Shown: positions 223 to 59,026 of the stretch, piece by piece | How positions within the stretch are numbered: position 1 is the stretch's first letter | Layout: every line of letters starts with the position of its first letter | Assembly (NCBI GenBank): GCA_965202585.1 | Contig: CBDBBG010000103.1 | Coordinates: 1 to 64,000 of the forward strand | From: Thalia democratica | Taxonomy: Eukaryota | Length of the DNA: 64,000 nucleotides | Reading direction: 5' to 3' | Notes under the pieces: generated by a model | Database searches by the model: none | The model's input: the letters and a program-made list of their open reading frames with translations, nothing else | Told to the model about the DNA's origin: nothing | Position numbers and translations under genes: made by a program

Positions 223-1879
223 ATGGAATCCATTAAAAGAAAAGTTGAAGAGTTTACGAAAAGTCACCCTGGCTGTAGAAGTTTTCTACAAGATATGGTC
301 AGGAAGGCGGAAGAAGAAAAACATGATTACAAAAAAGAGAAGTTATTTAAAAAAGCTAAAGAGTTGTGTGAATATAATGTTGCAAATTTCAAAAAATGTG
401 TTCTTCCTGGTTTTAAATACAAAATTGAGCTGCTAGAAACAAACCACCCAGACTACGAACTTCTCGAAAGTTCTATAAAAGCTAACCATAGTTCTAAAAA
501 TCAAATGACCATAATGCAAAAGACTAATTGTTTGAAAATATACAGAGTAGTATGTAATGAAAAAATTTCAACTGAGACGAGCAGTTCTAATCAGATACTT
601 TTGCTTCATGGAACAAAAGCACCAAATGTAGGAGGAATCTTAAAGTCAGGATTCAATCCATCTCAAAAAGGATCTTATGGACCTGGAGTATATCTTACTA
701 ACAGTTTTAGTTATGCTTATGGTTACGGTAACTACTTTGCAACAGAAGATAATATGATTAAACATCTTAGATACTATTTTGTGAACAGTGTACCGTTTCC
801 TGAATTACATTCATATGGTAAGGAATTTAAAATAACAAAATCCTTTGAAGACTATCTTAGTAAAGAGCCATCAGTTGAATTTTATAAGTTTGGTTCACAA
901 CAAAAAATCAAAATTGAAGAGTCTACATTAGACTTGTTTGATAGCCATAACAGAAAACTTTTAAAAGGCTCATTTCAAAATATTGAGCAACAAAGTATAG
1001 CTTTAGCTCACCATAGTTTAGTAGTGCCTGCTTATTTAATTGAAATTGAAGAAAAAACTAAAGTAGACGATATAGTTAATGAAATACTCTATAGTTGTTT
1101 AAAAATATTCAGGTATACGAAAAATACTGCTAATTTTGATATAAATCGTAAAACTAACAGAGAAAATAACACCCAAAATGAAGTTTCCGAATTTTCTTTT
1201 TCAATGATTGAAAAGAGCTAAAGAATGAAATTATTCGACACTATCGAGCAAAAACTGATCGTCTTACTTTTGCATTAGAATATAATATCAATTCGATGAT
1301 AAAACAACTTTCTTTTCAATTAAGCAGTATTTATGAGGTAAAAAATAACGAAAAACGAAAATTTAGTACAGAACTTCTACATAAAGATGACAATGACTAC
1401 AAGTTTATTTTGCGTTCAATTGATAACAAAAATGGTGACAATTTTCGAAAAATTAGACAATTGTTCAGAGTTAACCCTACTAATAAAAATGAAGTCCTCA
1501 ACTATAAACATAAATACCTTTATCTAAAAGGAGTAAAAGCGGACAAAGTAAAACACGTTTTGACGAATGGTTTTACTGATTTAAATAGGCTAAATATGTT
1601 TGACTCAATTTTACGAACAACTGCAACGAACTTGAATTTTGCAACATTTGTTGGTAGTAATTATTGTGAAGTTGACAACACAGTGAAAAAGTTGTCATTT
1701 GTATTTGTTGTCTGTTCAAAAGAAAATTATAAACATCAAAACGATGATAAAACAATCGAGGATAGCAGGAAAAGTGTAACAAGAGAAGGAATACTTAGTA
1801 ATTTGGAGCATGGGGTTATAAAAATATTTCGGGTTCAGTTCCAGCCTACTTGATTATATTTGAGTTAGATGAACATTGA
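223..1879 (+). CDS. Intronless tandem ADP-ribosyltransferase (PARP catalytic-like) domain protein, copy 1 (~550 aa); reading frame broken by two 1-bp deletions in A-runs
   Basis: ORFs 223..1221 and 1296..1853 join into one protein if one A is added at 1211-1214 and one at 1820-1824 (copy 2 has the extra A at both sites). PARP signature LLLHGT...ILKSGF...YGPGVYLTNSFSYAYGY and C-terminal VVPAYLI. A second degenerate domain follows (YLKGV...VLTNGF...VPAYLIIFE). Stop TGA at 1877-1879. Confidence 0.85.
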
Positions 1880-2609
1880 AGTAAAGAATATGTTCAAATT
1901 TCTTTCTTTTTACAAAAATTAATTTAAGTATAATTATTTGAACGTTTTCCTAGTGAAATATATCTTTTATAAAATTTCTTTCCACTTCAAATAACTTATT
2001 TTAATTTTAAGTAATATGTACGTTACTTAAAAAATTAATAGTAGTAAAGTATTTCTTAACTGACATTGTTTAAATGTCTGTTTTATTTTATCTGTTTATT
2101 TTAAACTTATTCTAATGTACTTTATTAGTTTCTAGAGTAAAACGGTTTTAAATTTTAATTAAGAAAAAAAACCTAGAACTTTTTTCTGCTTTAAAGATAA
2201 TAGTCACTTATTATTTTTAAATTTTACATGTAATTCTGTATATTGAAATAAATTTGAGCAATTAAATACTGTTTTCTATTATATTATTTATAAAAATCCT
2301 TAACAATAAATATAAATTAATTTTTACATATAAATTTAAGTTATAAAGTTATCTTAAAGTTTTAAAAAGACAAAAGTTACTTATTAAGAAGTTATATTTT
2401 TATTGATGAATTATTAGAGTTATAATTCAAAGTTTTGCCCGATATTTATCAATATATGTTTTTTAATTCTATAATTCGCTAGCACTGATTTATGTTTTTT
2501 AGTTATTTATGATAAACTATACTAAAAATGTTAGTTTTCGTTAAAATTTAAACTAAGACAAAAATTACTATGGCTTGTTAGTTAAAAAAGCAAAACTAAG
2601 CTGCTACAC

Positions 2610-2690
2610 TTAGCTTTTTTTTTCTTTTAAGCAAAATTAGCTTTTTTTTTTCCTTTAAGCAAAATTAGCTTTTTTTTTCCTTTAAGCGAA
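2610..2690 (+). repeat. ~28-bp x3 tandem repeat (TAGCTTTTTTTTTCCTTTAAGCAAAAT)
   Basis: Three copies here and at ~13104-13180; a single copy at ~48376-48400. Confidence 0.85.
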
Positions 2691-3121
2691 ATATATATTA
2701 AAGTAGGACGAGTAAGTATATATTAATTCTAAAACACAATTGCTATTTCTATAACAAAAAGATAGTATACTTAATTTATTCTAGTCATGAATTATACATA
2801 GTTCACAATCAGTAACTAATACTGATGCTTAATGGCTTATATTCACTTTTTAAATTTTTTTTGCTACAATTTATGAAAACATGATTTATTTCTTTAGTGG
2901 GAAAATTTATTGATTTATGAGGTCTTTTGTAGCTATATAGGCTTTTTTATTCTTATATGATGTAATTATTAGTTTTACTTTTTAAAATAATTTTTTTAAA
3001 TTGATTTTAGATAGCTAATAGTCTTCACTATTTTTTAAAACTTAAGTTACACATCATTTTGAGTTATTTTTGTGCATAAAGCATAAGAGTCAATAATGCA
3101 CGAAGTAAACTATGCACTATA

Positions 3122-3463
3122 TCAACAAGCATATCTTTTGCACGGTGATGGGTCAGATATGCACGAAAACACTTTTAAAGAAATTGTCAAGTATGCACGA
3201 ATAGTCACTTTGCAAGAAAAGTCACTTTTATACGAAGACAATTTTGCATGGCGTCACTTTTCACGAAGGGTCTTTTTTTTTTCATGAAGATAGTTTTGCT
3301 CGTGGAAAAGTGAGCCTTCGTGAAAAGTGTCTTTGTGCTAAAATTTCCTTCGTGCCAAATTGTTTTTGTGCAAAATTGACTATTCGTTTATATTTGACAT
3401 TTTGTTTAAAAGTGCCTTTGTGCATATTTGACCAATTACCGTGCAAAAGATATACTTATTTGT
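3122..3463. mobile_element. Palindromic MITE/foldback-like element with ~120-bp terminal inverted repeats
   Basis: Left arm CAACAAGCATATCTTTTGCACGGTGATGGGTCAGATATGCACG... matches the reverse complement of the right arm ...GTGCATATTTGACCAATTACCGTGCAAAAGATATACTTATTTG. Internal GTCACTTTTGCACG-like short repeats. No TSD identified. Confidence 0.7.
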
Positions 3464-4224
3464 AACAAATATTGTCAACTATTAATTAAATATTCTAATA
3501 AAGATGAAGATATTCTATAAAAGGTATTTCAAAACAAATGACTAGATCAAAACATTGTTTTGAACATTTTTTACTCTTTTTATATTGTGATACGGAAGCG
3601 TTAAAAATAACAAGCTTGATTGAACAGTGGCAGTAGTAATTAATTATTTATAAGTAGTCTGACATTAAAAGTCTAACTAATAATCTGGTTGCTGTTTTAT
3701 TGTTGAATTTAGTACAGTATTGTAAAATATTGGTTCAAATTAATAACTTTTTGTAGTAAATGTAAATTCGTCTCGACAATGTTTAATAAATTAAGTGGAA
3801 CCCGGTCTGTGAGCATGTAAATCTGGCCCGCTAAACCAAATTTTAAACTTACACTAGATAAGGGGTCAGAAAACCGCAGCCTATGAAGAGCAAAACAAAA
3901 TGCATCCCATAAAAGGTACAAACTCGTGCCCACGAAAATAACATCTTTAAATATAAATCTAGATTTCAGGATATTTAAAATTAAGAGTATAAACAGAATG
4001 AACGGGAAATTTAAAACTTGCACTATATTTACTGAAGTTTGAAGCGGCAAACTAAATAAAAAAACTTTCAAAATTAGTTGAACTATTTATTTCTTTTAAA
4101 CTTTTGAAACTATGCTGCCCGCCAAAAACTAATGTTGCTCATCTATTTTCTAGAGTGTACTTTTTTCAACCAAACATGCTGAGATAAAAGCAGGAGTCGG
4201 CAAACTGTGAATTTTATTTCAAAT

Positions 4225-4481
4225 CAAATGCAGCCAACGAAAAGTTAAATACGGATTGCAACATGTAAATGTTCAAAAACTTTAACGAAGTAGTCAGGAA
4301 TATAATATTAAAGGCAAAATGTTTGACAAATGGTACATCTTACGGGAAATTCATAACTCGCACTAGGTATTTCGGGTATGTTATGAAGAATGATAACAAA
4401 ACTACGATTGATAGTAGCAAATATTATGATTTGCAAAATTTTTTTTGTGAAAATTATATGCCAGCTGACTTCTGGTTTTAA
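4225..4481 (+). pseudogene. Decayed CTLD exon of the same family as the receptor-kinase ectodomain (also ~14690..14949 and ~49990..50259)
   Basis: Unit 2 reads TCTRYFEYVMKNNNKTTIDSCKYYNFQNLICEH, against KCAEFVRVMGANVKTLKSCRPLPRPHRVVCAEK in the kinase gene. Unit 3 has YGLQHVNVQKILRSS, against KGLTEVNF...RKILSGS. Stops and frameshifts differ among copies. Confidence 0.55.
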
Positions 4482-7400
4482 GTCAAAGGAGCAATGATTA
4501 AGAATAAAAAGAAATAAAAATTCTATAAAACAGAATTTCTGTGATTGTTTTTAAAAACGATAAATACAATTGAAACTTAATTTAACGCTTCAACAAAGTT
4601 TCCATTAATACTATGTTTATTTACTAAAGATTTAAATTTTAATAAACTAAAAAAAATTGGTTCTATAAAATCTCCCCCTTTCACTATGCAAAAATTTTAA
4701 TCTCAAAGTATCTATCAAATATTTTCGATAGTTTTGTTTGAGGTTAAAATGCTTCCAGCAACAAAACAGACGCTTTGTTTCACTTTATCTAATATTATAA
4801 TACTATTAAAACTTAAATCTATAAGTTGCTCTCATAATTTTTTGTTAGTATTAATAAACTGCTTAAAAGTTCACGTTTCAATCTCACAGTGCTACCAATG
4901 GTGTGAAAATACACATTATGGTAGACTCTTTTATTAAATAAAATTTACAATAAAGTTAAAATACTTTGTATAAGTTTATAGAATTTTTATCCTATTTAAA
5001 TTTCGTTCTTATAAGTTTATTGTAAAATGCTAAAATTATAAAGACATTTTTGTATAAAATAGTATTCAATAAAGACTGTTTTTTTAATCTTAAAACAATT
5101 TTTAATGTATATTAAATAAATCAGTAAATTAAATCAAAAACTAATTCTTTGATATGATCAATTTAAATAGTTTAAACCTCGAAGACAACTAATAATAAAG
5201 AATGTTGAATTCTATGTGGGGAATGCCCCGGAGTGGTGATCACGTTAGTGGCCACGTAAAACCGTATGAAGGTTTTTAGAGGGTAGCTTTGCTCTATTTG
5301 GACTGGTGGAGGTTCTATAACTAGTCAATGATAGGTAATGAGACTAAGATAATCAACTTGAGACTAAGATATTTTCAATCAATAAACAAAATGAAGACAA
5401 CGCAATTATAAATAATGAAATTATTAAGCTTTTAATACCAATAAATACAAATCTAAAAAATTAGTAAATTAGTCAAATGTAAACTAAGTTGTGTAATAGT
5501 TTAAATGAGTATAAGCCGTAACTTAATTGTATATATCAGCAGTTATAAATGTTATTTTATTTTGAACTAGAAACAAACTGCTGAGTTTCAATTCAACTAT
5601 TTAAAGCCAAATACAGAACTTATGTTCCAATAAGCAGCAAATACAAATCAGTTAAGTGAACTGCTTCCAATCTCAATGCCAAGTCAACAACCAATAAGCA
5701 GTGAATTGACAGCAAGCCAATTATGAAAAAAAAAAGAATTTGTTTTTCTCTAATGCATCAGGAATAATGCCTTTAATACTTAATTACAAGTTATTTGCAG
5801 TTTACAATTTTGTTGATTGATGACTGGTTGTTTAATTTCAAGTTGTTAATAAAAATACTACTTATTATTACGGATGCATTACCAATGCATTGCAAGGTGA
5901 TAAAAAATATACATGGATAAAAAAATGATTATTCAAAGAGGGTAGAAGTTGATTGAAAACTAAACCAAATTTTAAGCTAAAAAAAAGTATAGTTTTAAGT
6001 TTTAAAAGCGAATATTTTTAACCTTTAACCGAAATATTTCTTTTTTTTTTACTTTAATCTGTGAAGATTTGTATGTGGGAGATTTTTTACAATTAAATAA
6101 ATAGGCAATATAAAACATCAACTTCATTAATATAATTTTTTGTTCAGTCTTGATTTGTAAATATTTTTGGCAATTTAAAGCAGTTGTTTTCTTCGAATTA
6201 GACACGTAGTGTATGTTTAGTTATTTAGTAGCAGTTGTCCTCTTCAGATCTACCAAGTATACTTGGTTATTGTTTACTAGTTTTAACTTTTGTTTATTAG
6301 TTGTCAAGTTCAGTGTAGTGTGCGTTTCTACATTCTCGTTATTAGGCTGCATTTTCATTCTCGCAGACCACAGTTGGCTGTACCCTGATGTAATCTAATT
6401 TTTTAGAGGTTTCTAGGCCTTAGAAAGGTTAGAATGTTTGAGAATTATGTAACTACTTTTTAGCAAATATGGTTTATCAAGGTTTAGGTAGAAAGTAAGC
6501 ATTATATCCGTAAACTCTATTTCTCTGTAACAAGTTCTTCATTTAAAAGCAATGGCCTAATGCAGTGAGAAAATGTTAAATTAAAATATTTTATACACTT
6601 TCAAGAAGTTATTCTAACTAGAATTTTATTTGTTAAATAAAGTATCAAAAACTTCTAAACAGCTGAAATTACACCTTACTTTCTCAGGTCGACCCAAAGT
6701 TCTTAAGGAACAATTCATAATTGAATTTATTTTTTTACCCATATAAAATAACAATGAATGTTTTACCATAAAAGTTTAAAATATTTTCACTCCAAATCTT
6801 CAGAAACTTACTGCAAAAATTTAAATACAACAATAGCTTTTTAAAAAAACAATAACTTTAAAAACTACTTAAGTAATTAGATTGCTGTAAAAAATCAATT
6901 AGCAAAATCAATTAATGTATTATTGATTTTAGTTAATTATAATATATTACCTTACAACTCATATACATTTTGCACCCCCAGATTATTCATTAATTTATGA
7001 AAAGAAAAGTGTGACATTTTTCAACAGCTTGACTTAGTATAAAAAGTATGTAAGATAAAACCTAAAACATTTTACCAAAAAGTGCAGCTCTTGTATAAAA
7101 AGCCTAATAAATCAAAAGTGAATGAATAAAATAAATTCTTAAAAATAAAAAAAAATAGACAATTCTTTTTGGAATATAATATTAATAATTTCATTTAATA
7201 AAACCTTTAGTGAACTTTATGTCAACTTTCGACTAAGTTTCGACAGAAAAATGTCACAGGTACACTAAAAGTAAACGTAAGATATTTAATGTTTTAAAGT
7301 TTACTGTATAAATCTCTCTATAACCAAAAAACGATTCATAATCGAGTAAAAAAAGAGCTAAATACTTTATAAACTTAGAAAACGTTTTTAACAACTAAAG

Positions 7401-10270
7401 TTTATCAATATAAGAAGTACACATCAGTAATAATAACTCGTTTTATTAGTTGCATCTTTTCATGTTACAGGTACGCAGATTGCTTAAAGGTTTAATAAAC
7501 AATTAATACTAATTTTGTAGAAAATTTGAGTCAAAAACATTTAAGTTTTCCGTTTTTTTTTCATTGCTTTAAGATCAAATTTAAATTAAGTATTTACAAT
7601 ACTAACGCTATAAGCAATTTGTTACTTTAAATAATTGGAGCATCCAAAACAACTTAAAGAAATAAAACGAGTAAAAGAAAATCTCATTAAACTACTAACC
7701 AAAAAAAAAACTAGAACCTTTAGTCCGACTATTAACTTAAAAAAAAACGTTTAAACAAACAAAGAATAGTTAAAATTACAAGAAATTTAACTAGTTGTTA
7801 TTTTTCAGAGAAAAAAAGTATACGCAACTGTTTATTTCAAAACATTTGTATTTAAATTAAGGGTAAAGTTAAATTTAAATCTTAAACATATAAAACAGTT
7901 TTAAAGAAAAAAGAACTGAACGAATTGTCTAAATGTATAACAATTAGTCAGATTAGTTAAAACGACAATTTATCTAGTCACTAAAATTCTGTTACTAAAA
8001 ATAATCTGTTTTGGTTAAAAGTTTACTAGAATAGTTAAACTAATCTAATAAAAGACTAACTGCAAAAAACTAAAAACAACATATTTGACTTACAATTTAA
8101 ACTCCCAAAACTAATTTACTGCTACGTTTACAGACTGTGAAAATAAAAAAAAATCCGAAAGTTTATTAAAGTCTAAACAAACTTAAATTATTTATAGCCA
8201 TAGTGGCTTCCATGTTGAAATTTACAAGTTTGACTTTTTGGCATTATACTTAAGCTTCCAATTTTGCGTAATAATTTAACAAATTTTCAAGTAGTTTCAT
8301 ACTTCCATACCATACTTAGATCAAATAAATATAAGTATATCAAAGTAAAATGAACAAGTTATTTCCACATGAAAAGTATTAACAAAATGGCTAAAAGAAA
8401 CTTATTTTTTAATTATAAATTCCAAGTTTTATAATATAACTTCTTAAAATTTTGACACCTCAAATTAAGTTTAAAAAATATTTTGTAAATAAGTTTTATA
8501 GTTTTAGAAAAAGTCTGTTTTATTATAAAGAAATTTATTTTAAACTTCTATCAAAAATAAATCAATTTTACTACAGAATTTCATCAAAAGCTTTAATCCT
8601 AAAAGAGTATATATTCTAATAATATTTAAGTTTTAGTACATAAACAAAGATTTTTTAAACAATTATTTATTGCGGTAGAGACTTTAAAATTACTTTTTAA
8701 AAGCAGCCACACACCAGGTTGCTTAAAATTTTTAAAAAACTTAGGCTAATTAAAAACTGTTTGAAGTAACTCGAAAAATGCTTATTTAATATTGCAAAAC
8801 TGAGAAATTAAATTTTCTTACATTTCATACTTTTTTTACAACTTTATTCTAAAAGTTACGTTTTTCTTCTGATTGTAAAGTATTTTTTTTTGTTATTATG
8901 ATTTGTTTTTTTTTTTAGTTATATGATTATTTTTTAGTTTTTACATTATTTTTTACGATAAATTAGGCTAGTTTAAAAAAAGTTTACGTCAAGCCAACTC
9001 AATCTTGTTTGCTCAATTTGCAAAACTGGGCTGTTTAAATATTTATTATAGGTTATAAGCTAGCTTTTTAACAATTTTTTATTTCTAAAGTTTTGTATAA
9101 TTAAATTTTATAAATAGTACTATTTATAGGCTATTAAGTAATTTTGAAGTGTTCAGTCATTTTAAAGTGTTTAGGTAGTCTTATGTATAATTTACTATTT
9201 TTAATTGACAGTTATCTCTTAAATCATGTTTATGTATTTGAAGTAAATTAGTTTTGGATTGGTTATATAATTTAAGATTATTTCTCTTAATCTAGTGTTT
9301 TTAGAATTTTATATATTCTTTTGTTTATTAAGATTTAAGTTCTATTCTAATGAAACTACTTTATTTTTTCCTGTTTGCAGAACATTTAGAGTCAGAATAT
9401 AAATTAATCATAAATAGAATACTACCATATAGTGTAGTTAGGATTGATATTGAAAAAAATCTATTTAGTTATATTTTTACTAGTTTAGTTTTGAATAAGA
9501 ACTAGAAACTATGAATTAGAGCCATATTGTATAATAAAAACTAAATTTTAATTTATCAGTCTAGTTTTGTGGTATAAGTATAAGAAATATATTTAAAACA
9601 TTATCTATTGATTTATAGTTTTAATCATTTTTTAGTCCACATTAGTTTAAGTTTTGTAGTATTGTTCCCTTAAACTTAAATTTTTCTTAAGTATTATTTT
9701 TCCAAGTTGCTTTTAAAAGTAACTTATAATTTTGAATACAATATAAACATACAAGTTTTTATAATAGGGGTTCGTTTTTTTAATGTATACATTACTTAAA
9801 AACTGTGTCTGATTTGATTAAAGTAGTCAAAAGTAGCATTTGTTGTTTATATGATAGTAAGTAAAGAAGTTTCCATATATTTATAATTTATATAGTTGAT
9901 ATATAAAATAACCTACAATCTGTCTGTAATTACACCATTAAACATTTTATACTTATAAAAAGATATTTTAAATTAAAATTTGATTATTTTTGTACCAAAA
10001 ATTCACAAACCTATCCTGTTCAGTTTCGTTATTTTAAATTGGTCATTAGTAAACGACACCTAATAGCTAATATTTATTTATTATTAACTAAACAAAAATG
10101 ATGTTGTGATCGAAGACGTTTAAAGTCTGTTAAATTTAGTTTGTTTTTAAAGCTTTAAAAAAAATAATCAATTTAATGTTGGGCTATATCAAAAAAAAAA
10201 TTTAATTATATTTAATCATTGATTTTATTTTTAATTGTTACCTTTGTAAACTTCAATAGATTTTAACCCA

Positions 10271-10458
10271 CTGTTTGTTGAAGATCGTATTTGTTTGATG
10301 CAGATCAAAAACTGTAATTTAAAGACCTTGAACTGTTTGTTGCAGATCTTAAACTGTGTATTGAAGATCTTAAACTTTATGTTAAAGATCCTAAACTGTT
10401 TGTTACTCATCTTTAACTGTTTGATGCACATCTTGAACTGTTTTTGCAGTTCCTAAAC
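10271..10458. repeat. 21-bp minisatellite (GATCTTAAACTGTTTGTTGCA-like), ~9 units, upstream of ART copy 2
   Basis: 21-bp periodicity is visible directly; minus-strand translation gives 7-aa repeats. Confidence 0.9.
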
Positions 10459-10712
10459 GCAAACGTTCTAGAGTGTCAGCCCGTTTTAATTAATAGCACA
10501 TTAAAAAAATATCTGCATGGGAATCTGTTATCAGGTAGTAAGCCAGGCCGAACCCCTTTCTGACTGTTTCTGGGCTTACAACAACTATTCGCATAAAAAC
10601 TATTTACTTTTCAGTTGTAAGCGTTTATGTTCTGTGAAAAAAAATACATTTTTTTATTTTAATAAACAAAAGTTATTTTTTAGTTTCTTTAATAAATTAC
10701 ATAACAAAAGCT

Positions 10713-12370
10713 ATGGAACCCATTAAAAGAAAAGTTGAAGAGTTTACGAAAAGTCACCCTGGCTGTAGAAGTTTTCTACAAGATATGGTCAGGAAGGCGA
10801 AGAAGAAAAACATGATTACAAAAAAGAGAAGTTATTTAAAAAAGCTAAAGAGTTGTGTGAATATAATGTTGCAAATTTCAAAAAATGTGTTCTTCCTGGT
10901 TTTAAATACAAAATTGAGCTGCTAGAAACAAACCACCCAGACTACGAACTTCTTGAAAGTTCTATAAAAACTAACCATAGTTCTAAAAATCAAATGACCA
11001 TAATGCAAAAGACTAATTGTTTGAAAATATACAGAGTAGTATGTAATGAAAAAATTTCAACTGAGACGAGCAGTTCTAATCAGATACTTTTGCTTCATGG
11101 AACAAAAGCACCAAATGTAGGAGGAATCTTAAAGTCAGGATTCAATCCGTCTCAAAAAGGATCTTATGGACCTGGAGTATATCTTACTAACAGTTTTAGT
11201 TATGCTTATGGTTACGGTAGCTACTTTGCAACAGAAGATAATATGATTTAACATCTTAGATACTATTTTGTGAACAGTGTACCGTTTCCTGAATTACATT
11301 CATATGGTAAGGAATTTAAAATAACAAAATCCTTTGAAGACTATCTTAGTAAAGAGCCATCAGTTGAATTTTATAAGTTTGGTTCACAACAAAAAATCAA
11401 AATTGAAGAGTCTACATTAGACTTGTTTGATAGCCATAACAGAAAACTTTTAAAAGGCTCATTTCAAAATATTGAGCAACAAAGTATAGCTTTAGCTCAC
11501 CATAGTTTAGTAGTGCCTGCTTATTTAATTGAAATTGAAGAAAAAACTAAAGTAGACGATATAGTTAATGAAATACTCTATAGTTGTTTAAAAATATTCA
11601 GGTATACGAAAAATACTGCTAATTTTGATATAAGTCGTAAAACTAACAGAGAAAATAACACCCAAAATGAAGTTTCCGAATTTTCTTTTTCAATGATTGA
11701 AAAAGAGCTAAAGAATGAAATTATTCGACACTATCGAGCAAAAACTGATCGTCTTACTTTTGCATTAGAATATAATATCAATTCGATGATAAAACAACTT
11801 TCTTTTCAATTAAGCAGTATTTATGAGGTAAAAAATAACGAAAAACGAAAATTTAGTACAGAACTTCTACATAAAGATGACAATGACTACAAGTTTATTT
11901 TGCGTTCAATTGATAACAAAAATGGTGACAATTTTCGAAAAATTAGACAATTGTTCAGAGTTAACCCTACTGATAAAAATGAAGTTCTCAACTACAAACA
12001 TAAATACCTTTATCTAAAAGGAGTTAAAGCGGACAAAGTAAAACATGTTTTGACGAATGGTTTTACTGATTTAAATAGGCTAAATATGTTTGACTCAATT
12101 TTACGAACAACTGCAACGAACTTGAATTTTGCAACATTTGTTGGTAGTAATTATTGTGAAGTTGACAACACAGTGAAAAAGTTGTCATTTGTATTTGTTG
12201 TCTGTTCAAAAGAAAATTATAAAGATCAAAACGATGATAAAACAATCGAGGATAGCAGGAAAAGTGTAACAAGAGAAGGAATACTTAGTAATTTGGAGCA
12301 TGGGGTTATAAAAAATATTTCGGGTTCAGTTCCAGCCTACTTGATTATATTTGAGTTAGATGAACATTGA
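10713..12370 (+). pseudogene. Tandem ART-domain gene, copy 2 (1-bp deletion near 10799 and nonsense TAA at 11249-11251)
   Basis: Near-identical to copy 1. It has GCGAAG where copy 1 has GCGGAAG (frameshift) and ATT TAA CAT where copy 1 has ATT AAA CAT. ORFs 10713, 10853 and 11270 tile the full protein. Confidence 0.8.
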
Positions 12371-46983: not shown

Positions 46984-47636
46984 TTATTCGACACTATCGT
47001 GCAAAAACTGATCGTCTCACTTTTGCATTAGATTATAATATTAATTCGATGATGAAACAACTTTCTTTCCAATTAAGCAGTATTTATGAGGTAAAAAATA
47101 ACGAAAAACGAAAATTTAGTACAGAACTTATACATAAAGATGATAATGACTACAAGTTTATTTTGCGTTCAATTGATAACAAAAGTGGTGATAATTTTCG
47201 AAAAATTAGACAGTTGTTCAGAGTTAACCCTACTGATAAAAATGAAGTTCTCAACTACAAACATAAGTACCTTTACCTAAAGGGAGTTAAAGCAGACAAA
47301 GTAAAACATGTTTTGACAAATGGTTTTACTGATAATTTAAACAGCCTAAACAAGTTTGACTCACTTTTACGAAAAACTGCAACGAACTTGAATTTTGCAA
47401 CATATGTTGGTAGTAATTACTGTGAAGTTGATAACACAGTGAAAAAGTTGTCATTTGTATTTGTTGTCTCTTCAAAAGAAAGTTATAAAGATCAAAACGA
47501 TAATAAAACTATCGAGGATAGCAGGAAAAGCGTCACAAGAGAAGGAATACTTAGTAATTTGGAGCATGAGGATGTAAAAAATATTTCGGGTTCAATTCCA
47601 GCCTACTTGATTATATTTGAGTTAGATGAATATTGA
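46984..47636 (+). pseudogene. Tandem ART-domain gene, copy 3, 5'-truncated (second, degenerate ART domain only)
   Basis: Homology to copies 1 and 2 starts abruptly at TTATTCGACACTATCG (46984); upstream sequence is unrelated. The ORF ends ...IPAYLIIFELDEY*. Confidence 0.85.
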
Positions 47637-48834
47637 AGTTAAGAATATGTTCAAATTTCTTTCTTTTTATATAAATTAATATAAGTATTTGTACGTTTTC
47701 CTAGTGAAATATATCTTTTAAAATAATTCTTTCAACTTCAAATAACTTATTTTAACTTTAAGTAATAAGTACGTTAGTTAAAAAATTATTAATAGTAAAA
47801 TATTTCTTAACTGACATTGTTAGAAGTGTCTGTTTTATTTTATGTGTTATTTTAAACTTATTCTAGTGTACTTTATTAGTTTCTAGATTAAAACGGTGTT
47901 TAAATTTAATTAAGAAGAAAAGCCTAGAACTTTTTACTGCTTCAAAGATAATAGTCACTTATTATTTTATGAAATTTAGTTTAAACATGTTGTTTCGTAT
48001 ATTTAAATAAATTCGAGCAAATAAATACTGTTGTCTGTTTTATTATTTATAATAAACCTTACCAATAAATATAAATTAATTTTTACATATAAATTAAATT
48101 ATAAAGTTATTTTAAAGTTTTAAAAACACAAAAGGTTACTTATTAAGAAATTTTATTTTTATTAATGAATTATTAGAATTATAATTCAAAAATTTTCCCG
48201 ATATTTGTCAATATATGTTTTTAATTCTATACTTCGCTAGCACTGATTTATGTTTTTAGTTATTTATGATGAACTATACTGAAAACGGTAGTTTTCGTTA
48301 AAATTTTAAAGTAGTACAAAAGTTACTATGGCTAATAGTTAGTAAAAAAGCAAAACTAACTAATTTAGGTACAATTAGCTAATTTTTTTCCGTTAAGCAA
48401 AATATATATTAAGATAGGACGAGTAGGTATATATTAATTCTAAAACACAATTGTTATTTCTATAACAAAAAGATAATATACTTAAATTATTCTAGTCTTG
48501 AATTTTGCATAGTTCACAGTCAGTAACTATTACTGATGCTTAATGGTTTGTATTCACTTTAAAAAAAAATTTTCTACAATTTTTGAAAGCATGATTTATT
48601 TCTTTAGCGGAAAAAAATTTATTGTATAATGAGCTCTTTTGTAGCTATATAGGCTTTTTAATTCTTATATGATGTATTTATCAGTTTTACTTTTATTTAA
48701 TAATTTTTCTAAATTTATTTTAGATAGCTAATAGTCTTCACTATTTTGAAAAACTTAAGTTAACTATCATTCTGAGTTATTTTTGTGCATAAGGCATATG
48801 AGTCAATAATGCACGAAGTAAACTATGCACTATA

Positions 48835-49173
48835 TCAACATGTATATCTTTTGCACGGTGATGGGTCAGATATGCATGAAAACACTTTTAAACAAATTGT
48901 CAAATGTGCACGAATAGTCACTTTGCACGAAAAGTCACTTTTATACGAAGACAATTTTGCATGGCGTCACTTTTCACGAAGGGTCTTTTTTTTCATGAAG
49001 ATAGTTTTGCTCGTGGAAAAGTGAACCTTTGTGAAAAGTGTCTTTGTGCTAAAATTTTCTTTGTGCCAAAGTGTTCTTGTGCAAAATAGACTTTTCGTTT
49101 ATATTTGACACTTTGTTTAAAAGTGTCTTTGTGCATATTTGACCAATTACCGTGCAAAAGATATACTTATTGT
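48835..49173. mobile_element. Same palindromic MITE in unit 3
   Basis: Orthologous copy of 3122..3463. Confidence 0.7.
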
Positions 49174-52100
49174 AACAAATATTGTCAACTACTAATTTAA
49201 TATTCTAATAAAGAAGAAGATATTCTATAGGTTATATTTCAAAAGAAATGACTAGATCAAAACATTGTTTTGACCTTTGTTTTCCTATTATTTCTTTTAA
49301 ATATATTGTGATACGGAAACGTTAAAAATAAAAAGCTTGATTGAACAGCTGCAGTAGTAATTAATTATTTATAAGTTATTTGACATTAAAAGTCTTACTA
49401 ATAATCTGGTTGCTGTTTTATCGTTGATGTTAGTACAGTATTGTAAAATATTGGTTCAAATTAATAACTTTTTTGTAGTAAATGTAAATTCGCCCCGACA
49501 ATATTTTATAAATTGAGTAGAACCCGGTCCGTGAGGATGTAAATCCGGCCCGCTAAACCAAATTTTAAACTTACACTAGATAAGGGGTCAGAAAACCGCA
49601 GCCTATGAAGAGCAAAACAAAATGCATCCCATAAAAGGTACAAACTCGTGCCCACGAAAATAACATCTTTGAATCTAAATCTAGATTTCCAGATATTTGA
49701 AATTAAGAGTATAAACAGAATACACGGAAAATTTCAAACTAACACCATATTAACTGAAGTTTGAAGCGGCAAAATAAATAAAAAAAACTTTCAAAATTAG
49801 TTGAACTATTTATTTTTTTTTAATTTAATGAAACTATCCTGCCCACCAAAATCTAAATTGACCATCTGTGTGAAAATGTTGCTCATCTATCTTCTAGAGT
49901 GTAATTTTTTCAACCAATCATGCTCAGATAAAAGCAGGAGTCGGCAAACTGTGAATTGATACGGGTTATAGTGCTTGCCGTGAGCATGTTTTTATTTCAA
50001 ATTAAATGCAGCCAACGAAAAGTTAAATACGGATTGCAACATGTAAATGTTCAAAAAATTTTACGAAGTAGTCAGGAATATAAAATTAAAGGCAAAATAT
50101 TTGACATTAGGTACATCGTACGGGAAATTCATAACTTGCACTAGGTATTTCGGGTATGTTAAGAACAATAATAACAAAACTACGATTGATAGTTGCAAAT
50201 ACTAGAATTTTCAAAATTTGCTTTGTGACCATTATACGCCAGCTGACTTCTGGTTTTAAGGCTAAAAAGCAATGATTATGAATAAAAAACATTAGGAAAA
50301 TTCTAAAAAAACAAAAATTCTGTGATCGTTTTTAAAAACGATAAATACAATTGAAACTTAATTTAACACTTAAACAAAGTTTCCATTATTACTACTTTTA
50401 TTTAATAAACTAAACAAAAAGGTTCAATAAAATGTCCCCCTTTCACTATGCAAAAATTTTAACCTCAAAGTATCTATCAAATACTTTCGGTAGTTTTGTT
50501 TGAGGTTAAAATGCTTCCAGCAACAAAACAGACGCTTTGTTTTACTTTATCTAAAATTATGATACTATTAAAACTTAAACTTATAAGTTGCTCTCATAAT
50601 TTTATGTTAGTATTAATAAACTGCTTAAAAGTTCACGTTGCAATCTCACGATTCTAACAATAGTGTGAAATGCACATAATGGTAGACTCTTTGATTTAAA
50701 AAAATTTACAATAAAGTTAATTTATACTTTGTATAAGTTTATAGAATTTTTATCCTATTTAAATTTCGTTCTTATTAGTTTATTGTAAAATACTAAAATT
50801 ATAAAGACATTTTTGTTTAAAATTGTATTCAATAATGATTGTTTTTTATCATAAAACAATTTTTGATGTATATAAATAAAATAGTAAATTAAATCAAAAA
50901 CTAATTTTTTGATATGATCGATTTAAATAGTTTAAACCTCAAAGACAACTAATAATAAAGAATGTTGAAATCTATGTGGGGAATGCCCCGGAGAGGTGGT
51001 CACGTTAGTGGCCATGTAAAACCGTTATGAAGGTTTTAAGAGGATAGCTTCGCTACATCTGGACAGGTGGAGGGTTTATAACTAGGGTCAATGTTAGGTA
51101 TAAACTTAGACTAAGATAATTTCAATCAATAAACAAAATGAATACAACGCAATAATAAATAATGAAATTATTAAGCTTTCAATACCAATAAATGCAAATC
51201 TAGAAAATTAGTAAATAAGTCAAATATAAACTAAGTTGTGTAATAGTTTAAATTAGTTTAAACCCTAATTTAATTGTATATATCAGCAGTTATAAATGCT
51301 ATTTTATTTTGAACTAGAAACAAACTGCTGGGTTCCAGTTCAAATATCTAAAGCCAACTACAGAAATTATGTTCTAATCAGCAGCAAATACAAATCAGTT
51401 AAGTGAACTGCTTCCAATCTCAATGCCAAGTCAACAACCAATAAGCAGTGAATTGACAGCAAGCCAATTATGAAAAAAAAAATGTTTTTCTCTAATGCAT
51501 CAGGAATAATGCCTTTTATACTTAATTACAAGTTATTTACAATTTACAATTTGGTTAATTGATGACTGGTTGTTTAATTTCAAGTTGTTAATAAAGAAAC
51601 TACTTATTATTACGGATGCATTACCAATGCATTGCAAGGTGATAAAAACATACATAGATAAAGAAATGATTATTCAAAGAGGATAGAAGTTGATTAAAAA
51701 CTAAACTAAATTGTAAGCTAAAAAAAGTATTAGTTTTAAGTTTTAAAAGCGAATCTTTTTTAAGCTTTAATCGAAATATTTCATTTTTTTTACTTTAATC
51801 TGTGAAGATTTTCATATGGGAGATTTTTTACAATTAAATTAAAAAGTAATATAAAACATCAACATCATTAATATAATTTTTTTGTTCAGTCTTGGTTTGT
51901 AAATATTTTTGGCAATTTAAAACAGCTGTTTTCTTCAAATTAGACATGTAGTTTATGTTTGGTTATTTAGTAGCAGTTTTCCTCTTTAAATCTACCAAGT
52001 ATACTTGGTTATTGTTTACTAGTTTTAACTTTTGGTTATTAGTTTTCAAGTTCAGTGTAGTGTGCGTCTCTACATTTTCGTTTTTAGGCTACATTTTCAT

Positions 52101-55100
52101 GCTCGCAGACCACAGTTGGCTGTACCCTGATGTAATCTAATTTTTTAGAGGTCTCTAGGCCTTAAAAAGGTTAGAATGTTTAAGAATTATGTAACTACAT
52201 TTTTAGCAAAGATGGTTTATCAAAGTTTAGGTAGAAAGTAAGTATTATATCCGTAAACTCTATTTCTCTGTAACAAGTTCTTCATCTTAAAAGCAATGGC
52301 CTAATGCAGTGAAGTAGTTTTAAATTAAAATATTTTATACATTTTCAAAGTTTTATTTCTAAAAAGAAGTTTATTTGTTAACTAAAGTAGCAAAAACTTC
52401 TAAGAGCAGAAATTACACCTTACTTTCTCAGGTCGACCCAAAGTTCTTGATGAACAATTTATAATTGAAATATATTTTTTACCCATATAAAATGACAATC
52501 AATGTTTTACCATAAGAATTTTAAAATATTTTTACTCCAAATCTTCAGAAACTTAATGCAAAAATTTAAATAGAACAATAGCTTTTTAAAAAAATAATAA
52601 CTTAAAAAAACTACTTAAGTAATTAGATTGGTGTAAAAAACAAATTAGCAAAATCAATTAATGTATTGTTGATTTTAATAAATTATAATATATTAGCTTA
52701 CATCTCATTTACATTTTTTGCATCCTTAGATTATTCATTAATTTATGAAAAGAAAGTGTAATATTTTTTAACAGCTTGACTTGATATAAAAAGTATGTAA
52801 GGTAAAACCTAAAACATTTTCACCAAAAAGTGCAGCTCTTATATAAAAAGCCTAATAAATCAAAAGTGAATGAATAAAATAAATTCTTAAAAGTTAAAAA
52901 AACAGACAATTCTTGTTGGAATATAAAATTAATAATTTCATTTGATAAAACCTTCAGTGAACTTTATGTCAACTTTCGACTAAGTTTCGACAGAAAAATG
53001 TCACAGGTACACTAACAGTAAACGTAAGATATTTAGTACTTTAAAGTTTACTGTATAAATCTCCCTGTAACCGCAAAACTAGTTTCACAATGAAGTAAGA
53101 AAAGAGCTAAATATCTTATAGACTCAGACTAGGTTTTTAACAACCAAAGTTTATCAATATAAGAAGTACACAGCAGTAATAATAACTCGTTTTATTATTT
53201 GCATCTTTTCATGTTACAAGTATGCAGGTTGCTTAAAGTTTAGTAAACAATTAATACTAATTATGTAGAAAAATTAAGTCAAAAACATTTAAGTTTTCCG
53301 TTTTTTTTTTTCATTGCTTTAAGATCAAATTTAAATTAAGTATTTATAATACTAACACTATAAGCAATTTATTAATTTAAAAATTTAGAGCATCCAAAAC
53401 AACTTAAAGAAAAAAAAAGTAAAAGAAAATCTCATTAAACTACTATACACAAAAAAACTAGAACCTTTAGTCCGACTATTAACTTAAAAAAAAACGTTTC
53501 AACAAACTAACAATAGTTAAAATTACAAGAAATATTACTAGCTGTTATTTTTCAGAGAAAAAACAGTATAAGCAATTGTTTATTTCAAAAACAATTGTAT
53601 TTAAATTAAGTGTAAAGTTAACTTTAAATCTTAAACATATAAAACAGTTTTAAAGAAAAAAGAACTAAACGAAATTGTCTAAATGTATAACAATTAGTCT
53701 AATTAGTTAAAACGACAAATTATCTATTCACTAAAATTCTGCTACCAAAAATAATCTGTTTTGGTTAAAAGTTTACTAGAATAGTTAAACTAATCTAATA
53801 AAAGACTAACTGCAAAAAACTAAAAACAACATATTTGACTTACAATTTAAACTCCCAAAACTAATTTACTGCTACGTTTACAGACTGTGAAAATAAAAAA
53901 ATCCGAAAGTTTATTAAAGTCTAAACAAACTTAAATTATTTATAGCCATAGTGGCTTCCATGTTGAAGTTTACAAATTTGACTTTTTGGCATTATATTAA
54001 AGCTACCAATTTTGCTTAATAACTTAACAAAATTTCAAGTAGTTTCATACTTCCATACCATACTTAGATCAAATAAATATAAGTATATCGAAGTAAAATA
54101 AATAAGTTATTTCCACATGAAAAGTATTAACAAAAACGGCTAAATGAAACTTAATTTTTAATTATAACTTCTAAATTTTATAGCATAACTTTATAAAATT
54201 TTGACACCTCAAATTAAGTTTTAAAAATATTTTGTAAATAAGTTTTATAGTTTTAGAAAAAGTCTGTTTTATTATAAAGAAATTTATTTTAAACTTCTAT
54301 TAAAAATAAATCAACTTTACTACAGAATTTCATCAAAACCTTTAAATCTAAAAGAGTATATATTCTAATAAAATTTAAGTTTTAGTACATAAACAAAGAT
54401 TTTCTAAAGAATTATTTATTGCGGTAGACACTTTAAATTTATTTTTAAAAAGCAGCCACGCACACAGGTTGCTTAATATTTTAGAAAAACTTAAGCTAGT
54501 TAAAAACTTTTTGAAGTGACTTGAAAAATACTTGTTTAATATTGGAAAACTGAGAAATTAAACTTCCCTACATTTTATACTTTTTTACATTTTTAATCTA
54601 AAAGTTATGTTTATCTTCTGATTATTAAGTTTATTTCTTGTTATTATGATTCGTTTTTTTATTTAATTATATGATTACTTTTTAGTTTTTACATTACTTT
54701 TCAGAATAAGTTAGACTAGTTTAAAAAAAGTTTATGTCAAGCCAACTCAATCTTGTTTGCTCAATTTGCAAAACTGGGCTATTTTAAATATTTTTTATAA
54801 GTTATAAGCTAGCTTTTTAACAATTTTTTATTTCTAAAGTATTGTATAATTAACTTTTATAAATAGTACTGTTTAAAGGCTATTAAGTACTTTTGAAGTG
54901 TTAAGTCATTTTAAAGTGTTTAGCCCTTTTAAGTAGTCTTATGTATAATTTACTTTTTTTAATTAACAGTTATCTTTTAAGTCATGTTTATGTATTTGCA
55001 GTAAATTAGTTTTGGATTGGTTATATAATTTAAAATTTTTAAACTTTATCTTGTGTTTTTAGAGTTTTATATATTCTTTTGTTTATTAAGATTTAAGTTC

Positions 55101-56042
55101 TATTGTAATGGAACTACTTTATTTTCTTGTTTTATAATTATTGTAAGCAGAACATTTAGAGTCAGAATATAAATTAATCATATATAGAATACTACCATAT
55201 AGTGTTGTTAGGATTGATATTGAAAAAACTCTATTTAGTAAAATTTTAACTAGTTTTGTTTTGAATAAGAATTAGAAACTATGAATAAGAGCCATATTGT
55301 ATAATAAAAACTACATTTAAATTTATCAGTCTATTTTTGTGGTATAAATATAAGAAATAGATTTTAAACAATATTCTATTGATTTATAGTTTTAATCATT
55401 TTTTAGTCTACATTAGTTATAGTTTTGTAGTATTTTTCACTTAAACTTAAATTGTTCTAAGTATTATTTTTCCAAGTTGTTTTTAAAAGTAACTTATAAT
55501 TTTGAACATAATATTAACATACAAGTTTTTATAATAAGGGTAAGTTTTTTTAATATATACATTACTTAAACACTGTGTCTGATTTGTGAAAAAGTAGTGA
55601 AAGTAGTATTTGTTGTTTATAACGTAGTAAATTAGGAAGTTCTCATATATTTATAATTTATAGATTTGATATATCAAATAACTACAATATGTCTGTAATT
55701 ACACCATTAAACATTTTATAGTTATAAAAAGATATTTTACATTAATATTTGATTCTTTTTATACCAAAAATTCACAAACTTACCGTGTTGTGTTTCGTTA
55801 TTCTTAATTTGTCATTAGTAGAAGACACCTAATAGCTAGTATTAATTTATTACAAACAAAACAAATGATGTTATGATCAAAGACTGTTAAAATCTGTTAA
55901 ATTTAGTTTGTTTTTTAAGCTTTAAAAAAAAAATAATTAATTTAATGTTGGGCTATATTTAAAAAAATATTTTGAAATTATATTTAACTATTGGTTTTAT
56001 TTTAAATTGCTCCCTTTGTCAACTTCATTAGATTTTAACCTA

Positions 56043-56315
56043 CTGTTTGTTGAAGATCGTATTTGTTTGTTGTAGATCAAAAACTGTGATTTGAAGACCT
56101 TAAACTGTTTGTTGCAGATCTTAAACTGTGTTTTAAAGATCTTAAAGTTTATGTTAAAGATCCTAAACTGTTTGTTACTCATATTTAACTGTTTGTTGCA
56201 GATCCTAAACTGTTTGTTACTCATCTTTAACTGTTCGATGCACATCTTGAACTGTGTATTTAAGATCTTTAACTGTTTGATGCACATCTTGAACTGTTTG
56301 TTGCAGTTCCTAAAC
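56043..56315. repeat. 21-bp minisatellite, ~13 units, upstream of ART copy 4
   Basis: Same unit as 10271..10458 with about 4 extra repeats. Confidence 0.9.
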
Positions 56316-56566
56316 GCAAACGTTCTAGAGTGTTAGCCCGTTTTAATAAATAGCATATTGAAAAAATATCTGCATGGGAATCTGTTATCAGGTAGAAAGC
56401 CAGGCCAAACCCCTTTCTGATTGTTGTTGGGCTTACAACAACTATTCGCATAAAAACTATTTACTTTTCAGTTGTAAGTTTTTATGTTCTGTGAATAAAA
56501 ATATGTTTTTTTTCAATAATCTAAAGTTATTTTTTAGTTTCTTTAATAAATTACATAACAAAAGCT

Positions 56567-57556
56567 ATGGAACCCATTAAAAGAAAAGTTGAAGAGTTTA
56601 CGAAAAGTCACCCTGGCTGTAGAAGTTTTCTACAAGATATGGTTAGGAAGGCGGAAGAAGAAAAACATGATTACGAAAAAGAGCAGGTATTTAAAAAAGC
56701 TAAAGAGTTGTGTGAATATGATGTTGCAAATTTCAAAAAATGTGTACTTCCTGGTTTTAAATACAAAATTGAGCTGCTAGAAACAAACCACCCAGACTAC
56801 GAACTTCTTGAAAATTCTATAAAAACTAACAATAGTTCTAAAAATTAAATGACCATAATGCAAAAGACTAATTGTTTGAAAATATACAGAGTAGTAAGTA
56901 ATGAAAAATTTTCAACAGAGACGAGCAGTTCTAATCAGATACTTTTGCTTCATGGAACAAAAGAACCAAATGTAGGAGGAATCTTAAAGTCAGGATTCAA
57001 TCCGTCTCAAAAAGGATATTATGGACCTGGAGTATATCTTACTAACAGTTTTAGTTATGCTTATGGTTACGGTAACTACTTTGCAACAGAAGATAATATG
57101 ATTAAACATCTTAGATACTATTTTGTGAACAGTGTACCGAATCCTGGATTACATTCACATGGTAAGGAATTTAAAATAACAAAATCTTTTGAAGACTATC
57201 TTAGTAAAGAGCCATCAGTTGAAATTTATAAGTTTGGTTCAACACTAAAAATCAAAATTGAAGAGTCTACACTAGACTTGTTTGATAGTCATAACAGAAA
57301 ACTTTTAAAAGGCTCATTTCAAAATGTTGAGCAACAAAGTATAGCTTTAGCTCACCATAGTTTAGTAGTACCTGCTTATTTGATTGAAATTGAAGAAAAA
57401 ACTAATGTAGACGATATAGTTAATGAAATACTCTATAGTTGTTTAAAATTATTCAGGTATACGAAAAATACTGCTAATTTTGATATAAATCGTAAAACTA
57501 ACAGTGAAAATAATACCCAAAATGAAGTTTCCGAATTTTCTTTTTCAATGATTGAA
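56567..57556 (+). pseudogene. Tandem ART-domain gene, copy 4 (nonsense TAA at 56846-56848; runs into assembly gap)
   Basis: ORFs 56567..56848 and 56849..gap match the first ART domain of copy 1. AAT TAA ATG replaces AAT CAA ATG. Confidence 0.8.
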
Positions 57557-57656
57557 NNNNNNNNNNNNNNNNNNNNNNNNNNNNNNNNNNNNNNNNNNNN
57601 NNNNNNNNNNNNNNNNNNNNNNNNNNNNNNNNNNNNNNNNNNNNNNNNNNNNNNNN
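57557..57656. other. Assembly gap (exactly 100 N)
   Basis: Run of N; a round length typical of an unknown-size scaffold gap. Confidence 0.99.
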
Positions 57657-58309
57657 TTTAGATTTTGTTTAAAAATATTTTTCTAAAAAACAAAGTTTCG
57701 ATACAAGCTTTTATACAATTGAACTTAAGACTAATGCTACAAAAACATACTAAAACTTGCTAAAAGCTAGCAAATGATAACATAATATAGAAACTTTCGT
57801 TTTTACTGTAAGAATAGATAATATACTAGTTAAACATATTGTGTTAGGTTTGGATAAAATCTAATTTAATATGATTAGAATAAAATGCAAAAAAATCTGA
57901 GTTTACTGCCATTTGTTATAATTAAAATGGAACACAAATGTGAAACTAAACTATAAGTTGTTCATTGGATTTAACAACTGTGCTTTCTGTATGGTATTTA
58001 AAAGAAAACGTAAAAGGCCATTTTCTCAATGCAACGTATCGTTTACATTGTTGGTTGATTTGCTTTGTTGGCTAGTACATTATTTAAACTTTGTTTGCTT
58101 ATAATACACTTTTTATAACTATTTAGCTGTTTTTTGTGTTAGCTAAACTAAAATAATGTTAATTTGTTCATTTCAGGTGGTCCAATAAAGTATTCACCTA
58201 TATTAAAGTATTTTAAACTTATAGTAGATACTTTTTAAATATATTGGTAAAATATATTTTTTAATTTAGTGATGGAAAATATAACTTTACTTAACAATTT
58301 TTTTTTTAG

Positions 58310-59026
58310 ATTCAATATAACATGTCGTGTTCACATTCAGTACAGACCAGGACAGGCACTTTCACTGCTTATACTGAACTAGTTACTAAATGTGAGGCTG
58401 AAAAAAGGTGCAGAAAAAGAGGTGAAATCCTTGCACCTATTACGAATAAAAGGGATGCTCATAAAATTCTGAAGCTTTTTAAAACAAACACAAACAACGC
58501 AACGTGTGGTGTCAGCATTGACGACGGTTCTGACTATTGGGTAGGTTTAGACGTGACTTACACGAAAGATGAAGATTCAAAGATATTTTCAAATGGAATA
58601 AGGTGGCATGAGAGAAAGCACGGCAAGATCTACCATAACATGCTTGAATCGCACACCGATTGTGCTGAAGCATTGTTCATGCCCGTCTTTCACGAGGATA
58701 GACCTTATGCGATTGTTAACACGCAAAAGAAGTGTTTGAAAGAAAACAAGTACAAGTACCTGTGTCTGAAACCGGCTGAAAAAGTACTGGCTGAACCTAT
58801 CAGTCAAGACGGTGAACTTGAAGATGGTGAAACTGGTGTTAATGGTGTTTTTGTATCGTTAGATATTGGGCTGCTTGTGATTCTAGTTTGTGTTATTTTG
58901 GCTTACATTCGTTGGCAATCAGTTAGGAGAATGAAAACAGAAATCAGTAACTTGAAGGAAGAGGTCGGTATGTTGAAAAGAATTGCATTCAAAGATGAAG
59001 GAAAAGATAAATTTCAAAAAATTTGA
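58310..59026 (+). CDS. Second intact copy of the CTLD-TM protein
   Basis: 234-aa ORF collinear with 27086..27790, with the same upstream acceptor. Confidence 0.88.
   Translation: MQYNMSCSHSVQTRTGTFTAYTELVTKCEAEKRCRKRGEILAPITNKRDAHKILKLFKTNTNNATCGVSIDDGSDYWVGLDVTYTKDEDSKIFSNGIRWHERKHGKIYHNMLESHTDCAEALFMPVFHEDRPYAIVNTQKKCLKENKYKYLCLKPAEKVLAEPISQDGELEDGETGVNGVFVSLDIGLLVILVCVILAYIRWQSVRRMKTEISNLKEEVGMLKRIAFKDEGKDKFQKI

Follow-up and report, generated by a model that had tools for sequence, protein, structure and literature searches.

Gene content of the window

The window analysed here comprises 64,000 nucleotides of Thalia democratica DNA, positions 1-64000 of the unplaced contig C112 from an assembly of ~802 Mb in 1833 contigs, at 21-34% GC. 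Three gene families are recognised in it: a PARP-type protein with two ADP-ribosyltransferase (ART) domains (four copies), a lectin-like membrane protein with a C-type lectin-like domain (CTLD) and a transmembrane (TM) helix, here called CTLD-TM or simply the lectin (two intact genes and two fragments), and a TM kinase with a predicted lectin fold (one multi-exon gene and remnants of two more). A sequence-only reading of the window had named these families as accounting for every recognisable gene, and this we confirm: the remaining open reading frames (ORFs) of at least 100 amino acids belong to no family or run antisense to a GC-rich exon. It had also proposed that the three are sensor, transducer and effector of one innate-immune pathway. 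We find instead that the lectin and lectin-kinase genes are a conserved, co-duplicating bidirectional pair and that the three families are probably neighbours through duplication, not a sensor-transducer-effector module. The principal features are the following.

223-1874 (+), PARP copy 1, both domains, frameshift between ORFs 223-1221 and 1296-1853
10713-12370 (+), PARP copy 2, stop at reference codon 180 plus indels
20921-25806 (-), TM-kinase gene A, multi-exon
27086-27790 (+), CTLD-TM gene 1, intact, 234 amino acids
46984-47636 (+), PARP copy 3, C-terminal (degenerate) domain only
56567-57556 (+), PARP copy 4, N-terminal half only, stop at codon 94, ends at the assembly gap
57557-57656 (no strand), assembly gap (N letters)
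58322-59026 (+), CTLD-TM gene 2, intact, 234 amino acids, 94% identity to gene 1

The families had further been described as all decaying together. This holds for the PARP genes, of which all four copies are broken or truncated, with ratios of nonsynonymous to synonymous substitution (dN/dS) of 0.4-0.74, but not for the two CTLD-TM genes, which are intact and whose dN/dS of 0.13-0.27 indicates purifying selection.

A conserved head-to-head gene pair

CTLD-TM gene 1 stands head to head with kinase gene A, the start codons 1.28 kb apart. All ten of the loci that were fetched show the same divergent arrangement, with the lectin ORF on one strand and the kinase exons on the other; at nine of the ten the lectin ORF is intact. 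Among 28 other matches to the kinase ectodomain exon, 20 have a divergent lectin ORF 1.4-6.2 kb away, an arrangement with a chance probability of ~6e-4 per match. Moreover, the pairwise distances of lectin and kinase over the ten loci are strongly correlated (Mantel r 0.87, a value reached by none of 5000 permutations). Between loci, the ectodomain of the kinase has changed two to four times as fast as the lectin paired with it (alignments A1 of the CTLD-TM proteins and A2 of the ectodomains, ten loci), as illustrated by the comparisons C1A-C1B (0.63 for the ectodomain and 0.23 for the lectin) and C209-C4:80.6 (0.42 and 0.11). The two genes of a pair are most likely co-regulated from their common 1.3-6 kb spacer, and their products may act jointly at the membrane.

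One alternative, which we regard as possible but doubtful, is that the pairing merely follows from tandem duplication of the two genes as one block, their products having no functional coupling. Co-duplication does show common history rather than interaction, and many distant CTLD-TM genes, such as those of an array at C4:31-32 Mb, are without a detected kinase partner. Prediction of a complex between lectin residues 1-160 and the kinase ectodomain scored 0.00, with the alignments unused and the partner fold uncertain, and returns no verdict. What speaks for more than shared descent is that the pair survives down to ~35% protein identity in the lectin and ~15% in the kinase ectodomain, and is seen on six or more contigs or chromosomes, each time divergent and with a short spacer; random rearrangement and gene loss would be expected to split many pairs at such divergence.

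PARP genes join the pair at one duplicated locus

A genome search with the PARP gene returned at least 122 matches, ~95 of them at C7:48.5-54.5 Mb (chiefly at 51-54.5 Mb) and the rest on C2, C14, C30, C6, C8, C10 and some unplaced contigs. The lectin matches listed, the best 150 of ~330 candidates for each query, fall on C1, C4, C5, C6, C8, C9, C10 and elsewhere, and none of them lies on C7:48-55 Mb or beside other PARP groups. For the kinase, all candidates were scored with the ectodomain profile A2 (50/50, 29 matches) and with a profile of the alphaC exon, A5 (115/115, 48 matches), and no match to either lies near a PARP gene except on C112 and at C1:31.15-31.23 Mb. Among the lectin matches listed, five of the at least 122 PARP genes are near lectin or lectin-kinase genes, on C112 and at C1:31.19/31.22 Mb, while at least 117 other PARP genes lack a lectin or lectin-kinase neighbour and no PARP accompanies 20 or more other lectin/kinase pairs. 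The sequence-only reading had named a lack of linkage elsewhere in the genome, or capture of the families by a single segmental duplication, as refuting its proposal; for the PARP family this is what we observe, co-occurrence being limited to C112 and the paralogous C1 locus.

The segment C1:31.147-31.227 Mb is collinear with the window, inverted, at 92-97% nucleotide identity, and C1:31.15-31.23 Mb itself holds two lectin-kinase-PARP blocks. The PARPs of these loci share 93-95% protein identity with each other and at most 82% with the nearest C7 copy, which fits a single arrival followed by local duplication. PARP and kinase genes lie tail to tail, ~8.5 kb apart, and, given this convergent orientation and spacer, have no promoter in common.

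Several observations weigh against treating the PARP genes as mere neighbours. An intact PARP paralogue of 553 amino acids is present on C1, and two or more rounds of local duplication have not separated PARP from the pair. Eight kinase catalytic-loop exons, all on the (-) strand and ~33 kb apart, lie at C7:52470208-52712709, inside the PARP supercluster, where they fill the hole between a (+) PARP sub-array at 52.22-52.45 Mb and a (-) sub-array at 52.78-54.5 Mb; the family assignment of these kinases at C7:52.47-52.71 Mb is set by negative A2 and A5 profile searches only, and their catalytic exon is generic. The order PARP-PARP-kinase is repeated at C567:38639-38767. In addition, the lectin side of the comparison draws, for both of two independent CTLD-TM queries, on the best 150 candidates.

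The co-amplification could also be largely assembly redundancy, if C112 represents the other haplotype of C1:31.15-31.23 Mb or was joined wrongly. C112 is unplaced as well as collinear with the inverted C1 locus, its assembly gap falls exactly at the expected ~14.7 kb stretch with a kinase gene, its segment at 74-77 kb mirrors C1:31.150-31.154 Mb, and at ~25362 the frame of contigs from other samples is that of C1. The synonymous divergence of matching genes, 0.05-0.18, is high for alleles, and the blocks are ordered differently: in the window the region of kinase remnants (33-45 kb) separates them, on C1 it follows both. We hold this explanation to be unlikely, though worth keeping in view, and the tandem duplication inside each assembly is real either way.

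That a lectin sensor, a pseudokinase transducer and a PARP effector form one innate-immune pathway held together by selection is very improbable: the adjacency of the three families in both C1:31.15-31.23 Mb blocks and on C112, the intact C1 copy of the PARP, the immune roles of PARP-family mono-ARTs and CTLD receptors in other animals, and a dN/dS of 0.37 in the C1 kinase exons despite lost catalytic residues, as for a working pseudokinase, would all suit it, but the linkage is confined to one locus, assembled twice and internally duplicated, which within this genome refutes the proposal on its own terms, and the many PARPs and pairs that lack such a neighbour, the convergent orientation across the ~8.5 kb spacer with no common promoter and the breakage of 4/4 window PARP copies point the same way. 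The part of the proposal that fares better is the association of lectin and kinase (20/28 loci, Mantel r 0.87); the PARP is linked to them at a single duplicated locus.

The lectin-like membrane protein

The short lectin is a divergent CTLD followed by a C-terminal membrane helix. A 16-member CTLD-TM profile matches the CTLD of CD93 (E 1.6e-6), four cysteines (C24/C30/C114/C148) and a YW-x-GL motif of the WIGL type are conserved in alignment A1, and the Atlas neighbours of the protein are all Lectin_C clusters; single CTLD-TM sequences score 15 bits with Pfam Lectin_C, below the cut-off of 22.6. No conserved EPN/QPD or WND sugar/Ca motifs are present in alignment A1, and the protein is a CTLD but, by this motif test, not demonstrably a lectin in the strict sense.

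Despite an extracellular domain of the disulfide type, the CTLD-TM proteins have no signal peptide. Their Met-x-Cys start stands directly on the domain, is invariant in 16 members, and is conserved in genomic as well as transcript-derived members. An AG acceptor lies immediately 5' of the ATG of both window genes (27074-27790 and 58310-59026) and may be a trans-splice site. The closest known architectures are those of the group XIV CTLDs (CD93, thrombomodulin) and of proteins of the chondrolectin/layilin type, with the same CTLD, stalk, single membrane helix and short charged tail; in contrast to these, the CTLD-TM proteins lack a signal peptide and the EPN/QPD or WND motifs and remain below threshold for Pfam Lectin_C.

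A dense array of ~25 more distant CTLD-TM genes (27-35% identity) occupies C4:30.9-32.2 Mb and contains no match to the kinase ectodomain, so that the kinase-paired genes make up only part of the lectin family. Two CTLD-TM fragments lie in the window.

28941-29242 (-), CTLD-TM fragment, residues 1-110, twin of 60325-60495
60325-60495 (-), CTLD-TM fragment, twin of 28941-29242

The receptor kinase with a predicted lectin fold

The exon model of kinase gene A was built from paralogue comparison and splice motifs. The exons of gene A and the remnants of the two further kinase-family genes are as follows.

25770-25806 (-), gene A, signal exon
25245-25692 (-), gene A, compact CTLD-like ectodomain and TM exon
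~23934-24050 (-), gene A, alphaC exon
22185-22340 (-), gene A, hinge exon
~21660-21857 (-), gene A, catalytic-loop exon (HCNVNPET, SDFG)
21374-21526, 21098-21298 and 20921-21064 (-), gene A, further exons
36711-37463 (-), kinase-family remnant, two ectodomain-like exons (phmmer E 6e-4 for 36711-36947)
~38769-43870 (-), kinase-family gene C remnant
38960-39097 (-), gene C, alphaF exon, two TGA stops
39643-39726 (-), gene C, catalytic exon
42116-42217 (-), gene C, alphaC exon
~43643-43831 (-), gene C, juxtamembrane exon

Relative to the C1 copy, gene A has a 1-nt deletion (frameshift) at ~25350-25362, between the ectodomain and the membrane helix, and part of its hinge exon is out of frame. Contigs from other samples that are 96.5-97.5% like the window have the C1-type frame at ~25362, but they possibly represent the C1 paralogue and so do not settle the frameshift.

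The ectodomain is compact, with ~90 residues and four cysteines. Comparison of its sequence with CTLDs detects no similarity, whether by hhalign against A1 (probability 0.3), by a profile search of the PDB or by Pfam. An AlphaFold2 model computed from a 10-row alignment has a predicted local distance difference test score (pLDDT) of 87; its best Foldseek match has an E value of 0.13, and in a comparison with 48,161 chains each of its 50 best matches has a CTLD fold (Z 4.7-7.0, with 77-93 of 95 residues aligned). On this modelled structure, a compact CTLD-like fold with four cysteines is the best description of the ectodomain; support for the fold is good, and homology is not proven. The SWT (Sweet Tooth) domain was considered for the ectodomain and rejected, since it is a different and larger beta-sandwich of ~180 residues (PMC3531485).

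The catalytic exon is recognised as Pkinase (PF00069) with 39.7 bits, above the cut-off of 31.7 (E 4.8e-10). The sequence-only reading had called the protein a pseudokinase, which fits only part of the family. The catalytic loop is HCNVNPET, with SDFG or SGFG, in the copy of the window and in the two on C1, whereas all ten paralogues elsewhere keep HxDxKxxN and DFG. Judged by these motifs, the window/C1 lineage is a pseudokinase and the family as a whole looks active. The kinase exons of the two C1 copies give a dN/dS of 0.37, a value that a pseudokinase under retention could show.

Searches with a 36-position profile of the alphaC exon rank GCN2 (2e-6) and HRI (4e-6) first, with ZAK, JAK1, PERK and PKR at 1e-4. 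The affinity of this exon to eIF2-alpha kinases is thus only weak; the catalytic exon is generic, and the alphaF-exon query is too divergent to class distant kinases. Four closely spaced copies of the alphaC exon are found at C112:74025-77437 and again at C1:31150813-31154269, which suggests either that single exons were duplicated in tandem or that several gene remnants follow one another; their presence on both shows that C112 is collinear with C1 past the window.

The ectodomain/TM exon at 25245-25692 (-), like the region 36701-37700, reaches 55-59% GC in a genome of ~25% GC, and this high GC content gives rise to a spurious antisense ORF of 134 amino acids at 25340-25744. An exon of the kinase-family CTLD had been placed inside each ART unit. 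Searches of 1-20 kb and 45-57 kb by tblastn, phmmer, the A2 profile and reading of GC-rich islands found none, and that placement is not confirmed.

The double-PARP family

The PARP-type protein is encoded by an intronless gene and has ~553 amino acids with two PARP-fold domains. The first domain matches Pfam PF00644 with 46.4 bits, above the cut-off of 26.7 (E 4.2e-12), which identifies the four window copies as PARP, and in a 30-member alignment the NAD-binding His (H129) and Tyr (Y157) are nearly invariant. A profile of the family matches PARP3, PARP1, PARP15 and PARP4. In the AlphaFold2 model (pLDDT 82) the chain folds into two helix-plus-ART modules, and Foldseek matches the model to the catalytic domains of PARP3 and PARP1 (E 3e-8 to 1e-6). 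In domain 2 the His is replaced by Lys or a variable residue, and the earlier description as a double ART with a degenerate second copy is borne out by the model and by this substitution. The catalytic triad is H-Y-E in poly-ARTs and H-Y-hydrophobic in mono-ARTs, and alignments to the hidden Markov model end before reaching its third position. Going by the spacing to the YLI strand, this position would lie in a conserved A-H-H-x-L-V stretch and is apparently not Glu. An affinity to PARP16 (ARTD15_N), hinted at by the Atlas, was discarded, finding no backing from Pfam, the PDB sequence search or Foldseek.

Domain 1 has the same fold and the same His and Tyr as the catalytic domains of human PARP/ARTD proteins (PARP3, PARP1, PARP4, PARP15). 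Compared with the mono-ADP-ribosyltransferases of the PARP (ARTD) family, the proteins described here lack the WGR, macro, WWE and zinc finger accessory domains. They further differ from that family in their intronless gene, in a short helical N-terminus followed by two ART modules per chain, in the missing His of the second module, in a conserved His-His/Ser stretch that appears to occupy the position of the catalytic Glu (alignment A3), and in a copy number of at least 122. Compared with the intact C1 copy, PARP copy 1 of the window has internal deletions totalling 5 nt and a dN/dS of 0.40.

Duplications and the assembly gap

Self-comparison of the window by blastn resolves the PARP genes into tandem units.

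4-10494 and 10494-~20250 (+), tandem PARP units of ~10.5 kb, one PARP gene each
~45750-57556, further PARP tandem units

Positions 4-3766 are 97% identical to 10494-14265 and 90% identical to sequence within 46984-56215. A second duplication pairs 26408-31427 with 57657-62711 at 93%. Each PARP unit carries a foldback-like (self-complementary) element of ~335 nt (3123-3460, 13617-13952 and 48836-49172), with a reverse-orientation match of ~76% to the other units. Short-period repeats of up to 52% GC lie 3' of each lectin block, at 31551-31950, 32826-33125 and 63076-63425; several of their frames are open, RHFSTV and VTFAR being among the encoded motifs, and they probably represent a satellite or the remains of a transposon.

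On its left side (57556) the assembly gap cuts PARP copy 4 at codon ~330, past the stop that this copy has at codon 94; on its right side (57657) the sequence resumes at the homologue of position 26408, 5' of the lectin gene. The points that correspond to the two edges are separated, both in copy 2 and on C1, by ~14.7 kb that include a kinase gene. There is therefore no single reading frame across the gap, and an ORF of 270 amino acids that extends into the N letters (56849-57661) is an artefact of these discontinuous flanks.

Discussion

Our favoured explanation, local duplication without a three-part module, can be set out as a sequence of events. The window, part of an unplaced contig, would be a copy of the C1:31.15-31.23 Mb locus. 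The native content of that locus would be a lineage-specific bidirectional pair, a kinase-less membrane gene with an N-terminal CTLD and a divergent gene for a CTLD fold, a TM helix and a Ser/Thr kinase, and this pair is old, kept together and duplicated as a unit over the genome. A copy of the separate, intronless double-PARP family, whose home is the multi-megabase C7 array, would then have landed beside one pair, after which local duplication would have copied the entire block and, inside it, the 10.5 kb PARP unit. At this locus the PARP copies are dying, and the kinase lineage has lost its catalytic residues.

The kinase gene shares its logic with plant lectin receptor-like kinases (LecRLKs) and the Hydra receptor tyrosine kinase Sweet Tooth: in each, a single membrane helix joins a lectin-like ectodomain to a kinase in the cytoplasm (PMC7758398; PMC3531485, the latter citing Reidling et al. 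2000). The present ectodomain is modelled as a compact CTLD fold of ~90 residues with four cysteines, unlike the L-, G- or C-type lectin domains of plant LecRLKs. The kinase differs from those of Sweet Tooth and the LecRLKs in being of the Ser/Thr type, with an alphaC exon nearest, if weakly, to the eIF2-alpha kinases GCN2 and HRI, and in contrast to both systems each kinase gene has a kinase-less lectin gene as its partner. We found no description of this head-to-head design of a kinase-less lectin-like protein and a lectin-fold receptor kinase in the animal literature that was searched.

A second parallel is with the C-type lectin clusters of vertebrate natural killer and myeloid cells (CD94/NKG2), which likewise duplicate rapidly and place signalling and non-signalling CTLD members side by side. 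The kinase ectodomain model aligns to the CTLDs of CD94-NKG2A, CD72 and CLEC-2 (Z 5.6-6.3). The topology is however reversed, with the CTLD N-terminal and the TM helix C-terminal; signalling would be by a fused kinase and not through adaptors with immunoreceptor tyrosine-based activation or inhibition motifs (ITAM/ITIM); and on heterodimerisation the complex prediction returns no verdict. Tentatively, and with the odds rather against it, the pairs may be a lineage-specific paired-receptor recognition system, in which a fast-diversifying signalling receptor (compact CTLD, TM helix and stress-type Ser/Thr kinase) and a slower-evolving kinase-less CTLD co-receptor or decoy are co-expressed from a bidirectional promoter, the locus of the window being a derived pseudokinase variant. 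Such a system has no need of a PARP, and we give a role for the neighbouring PARP in it hardly any credence.

A three-part module, if true, would add a novel type of pathway to animal immunity; our findings point instead to a duplication artefact of genome architecture, and recognising this spares follow-up effort. The expansion of the double-PARP family to more than 120 intronless copies is notable by itself, as a story separate from that of the lectin pair. For the pair, at least 20 conserved head-to-head copies are present, and the fast-evolving kinase ectodomain fits a role in recognition.

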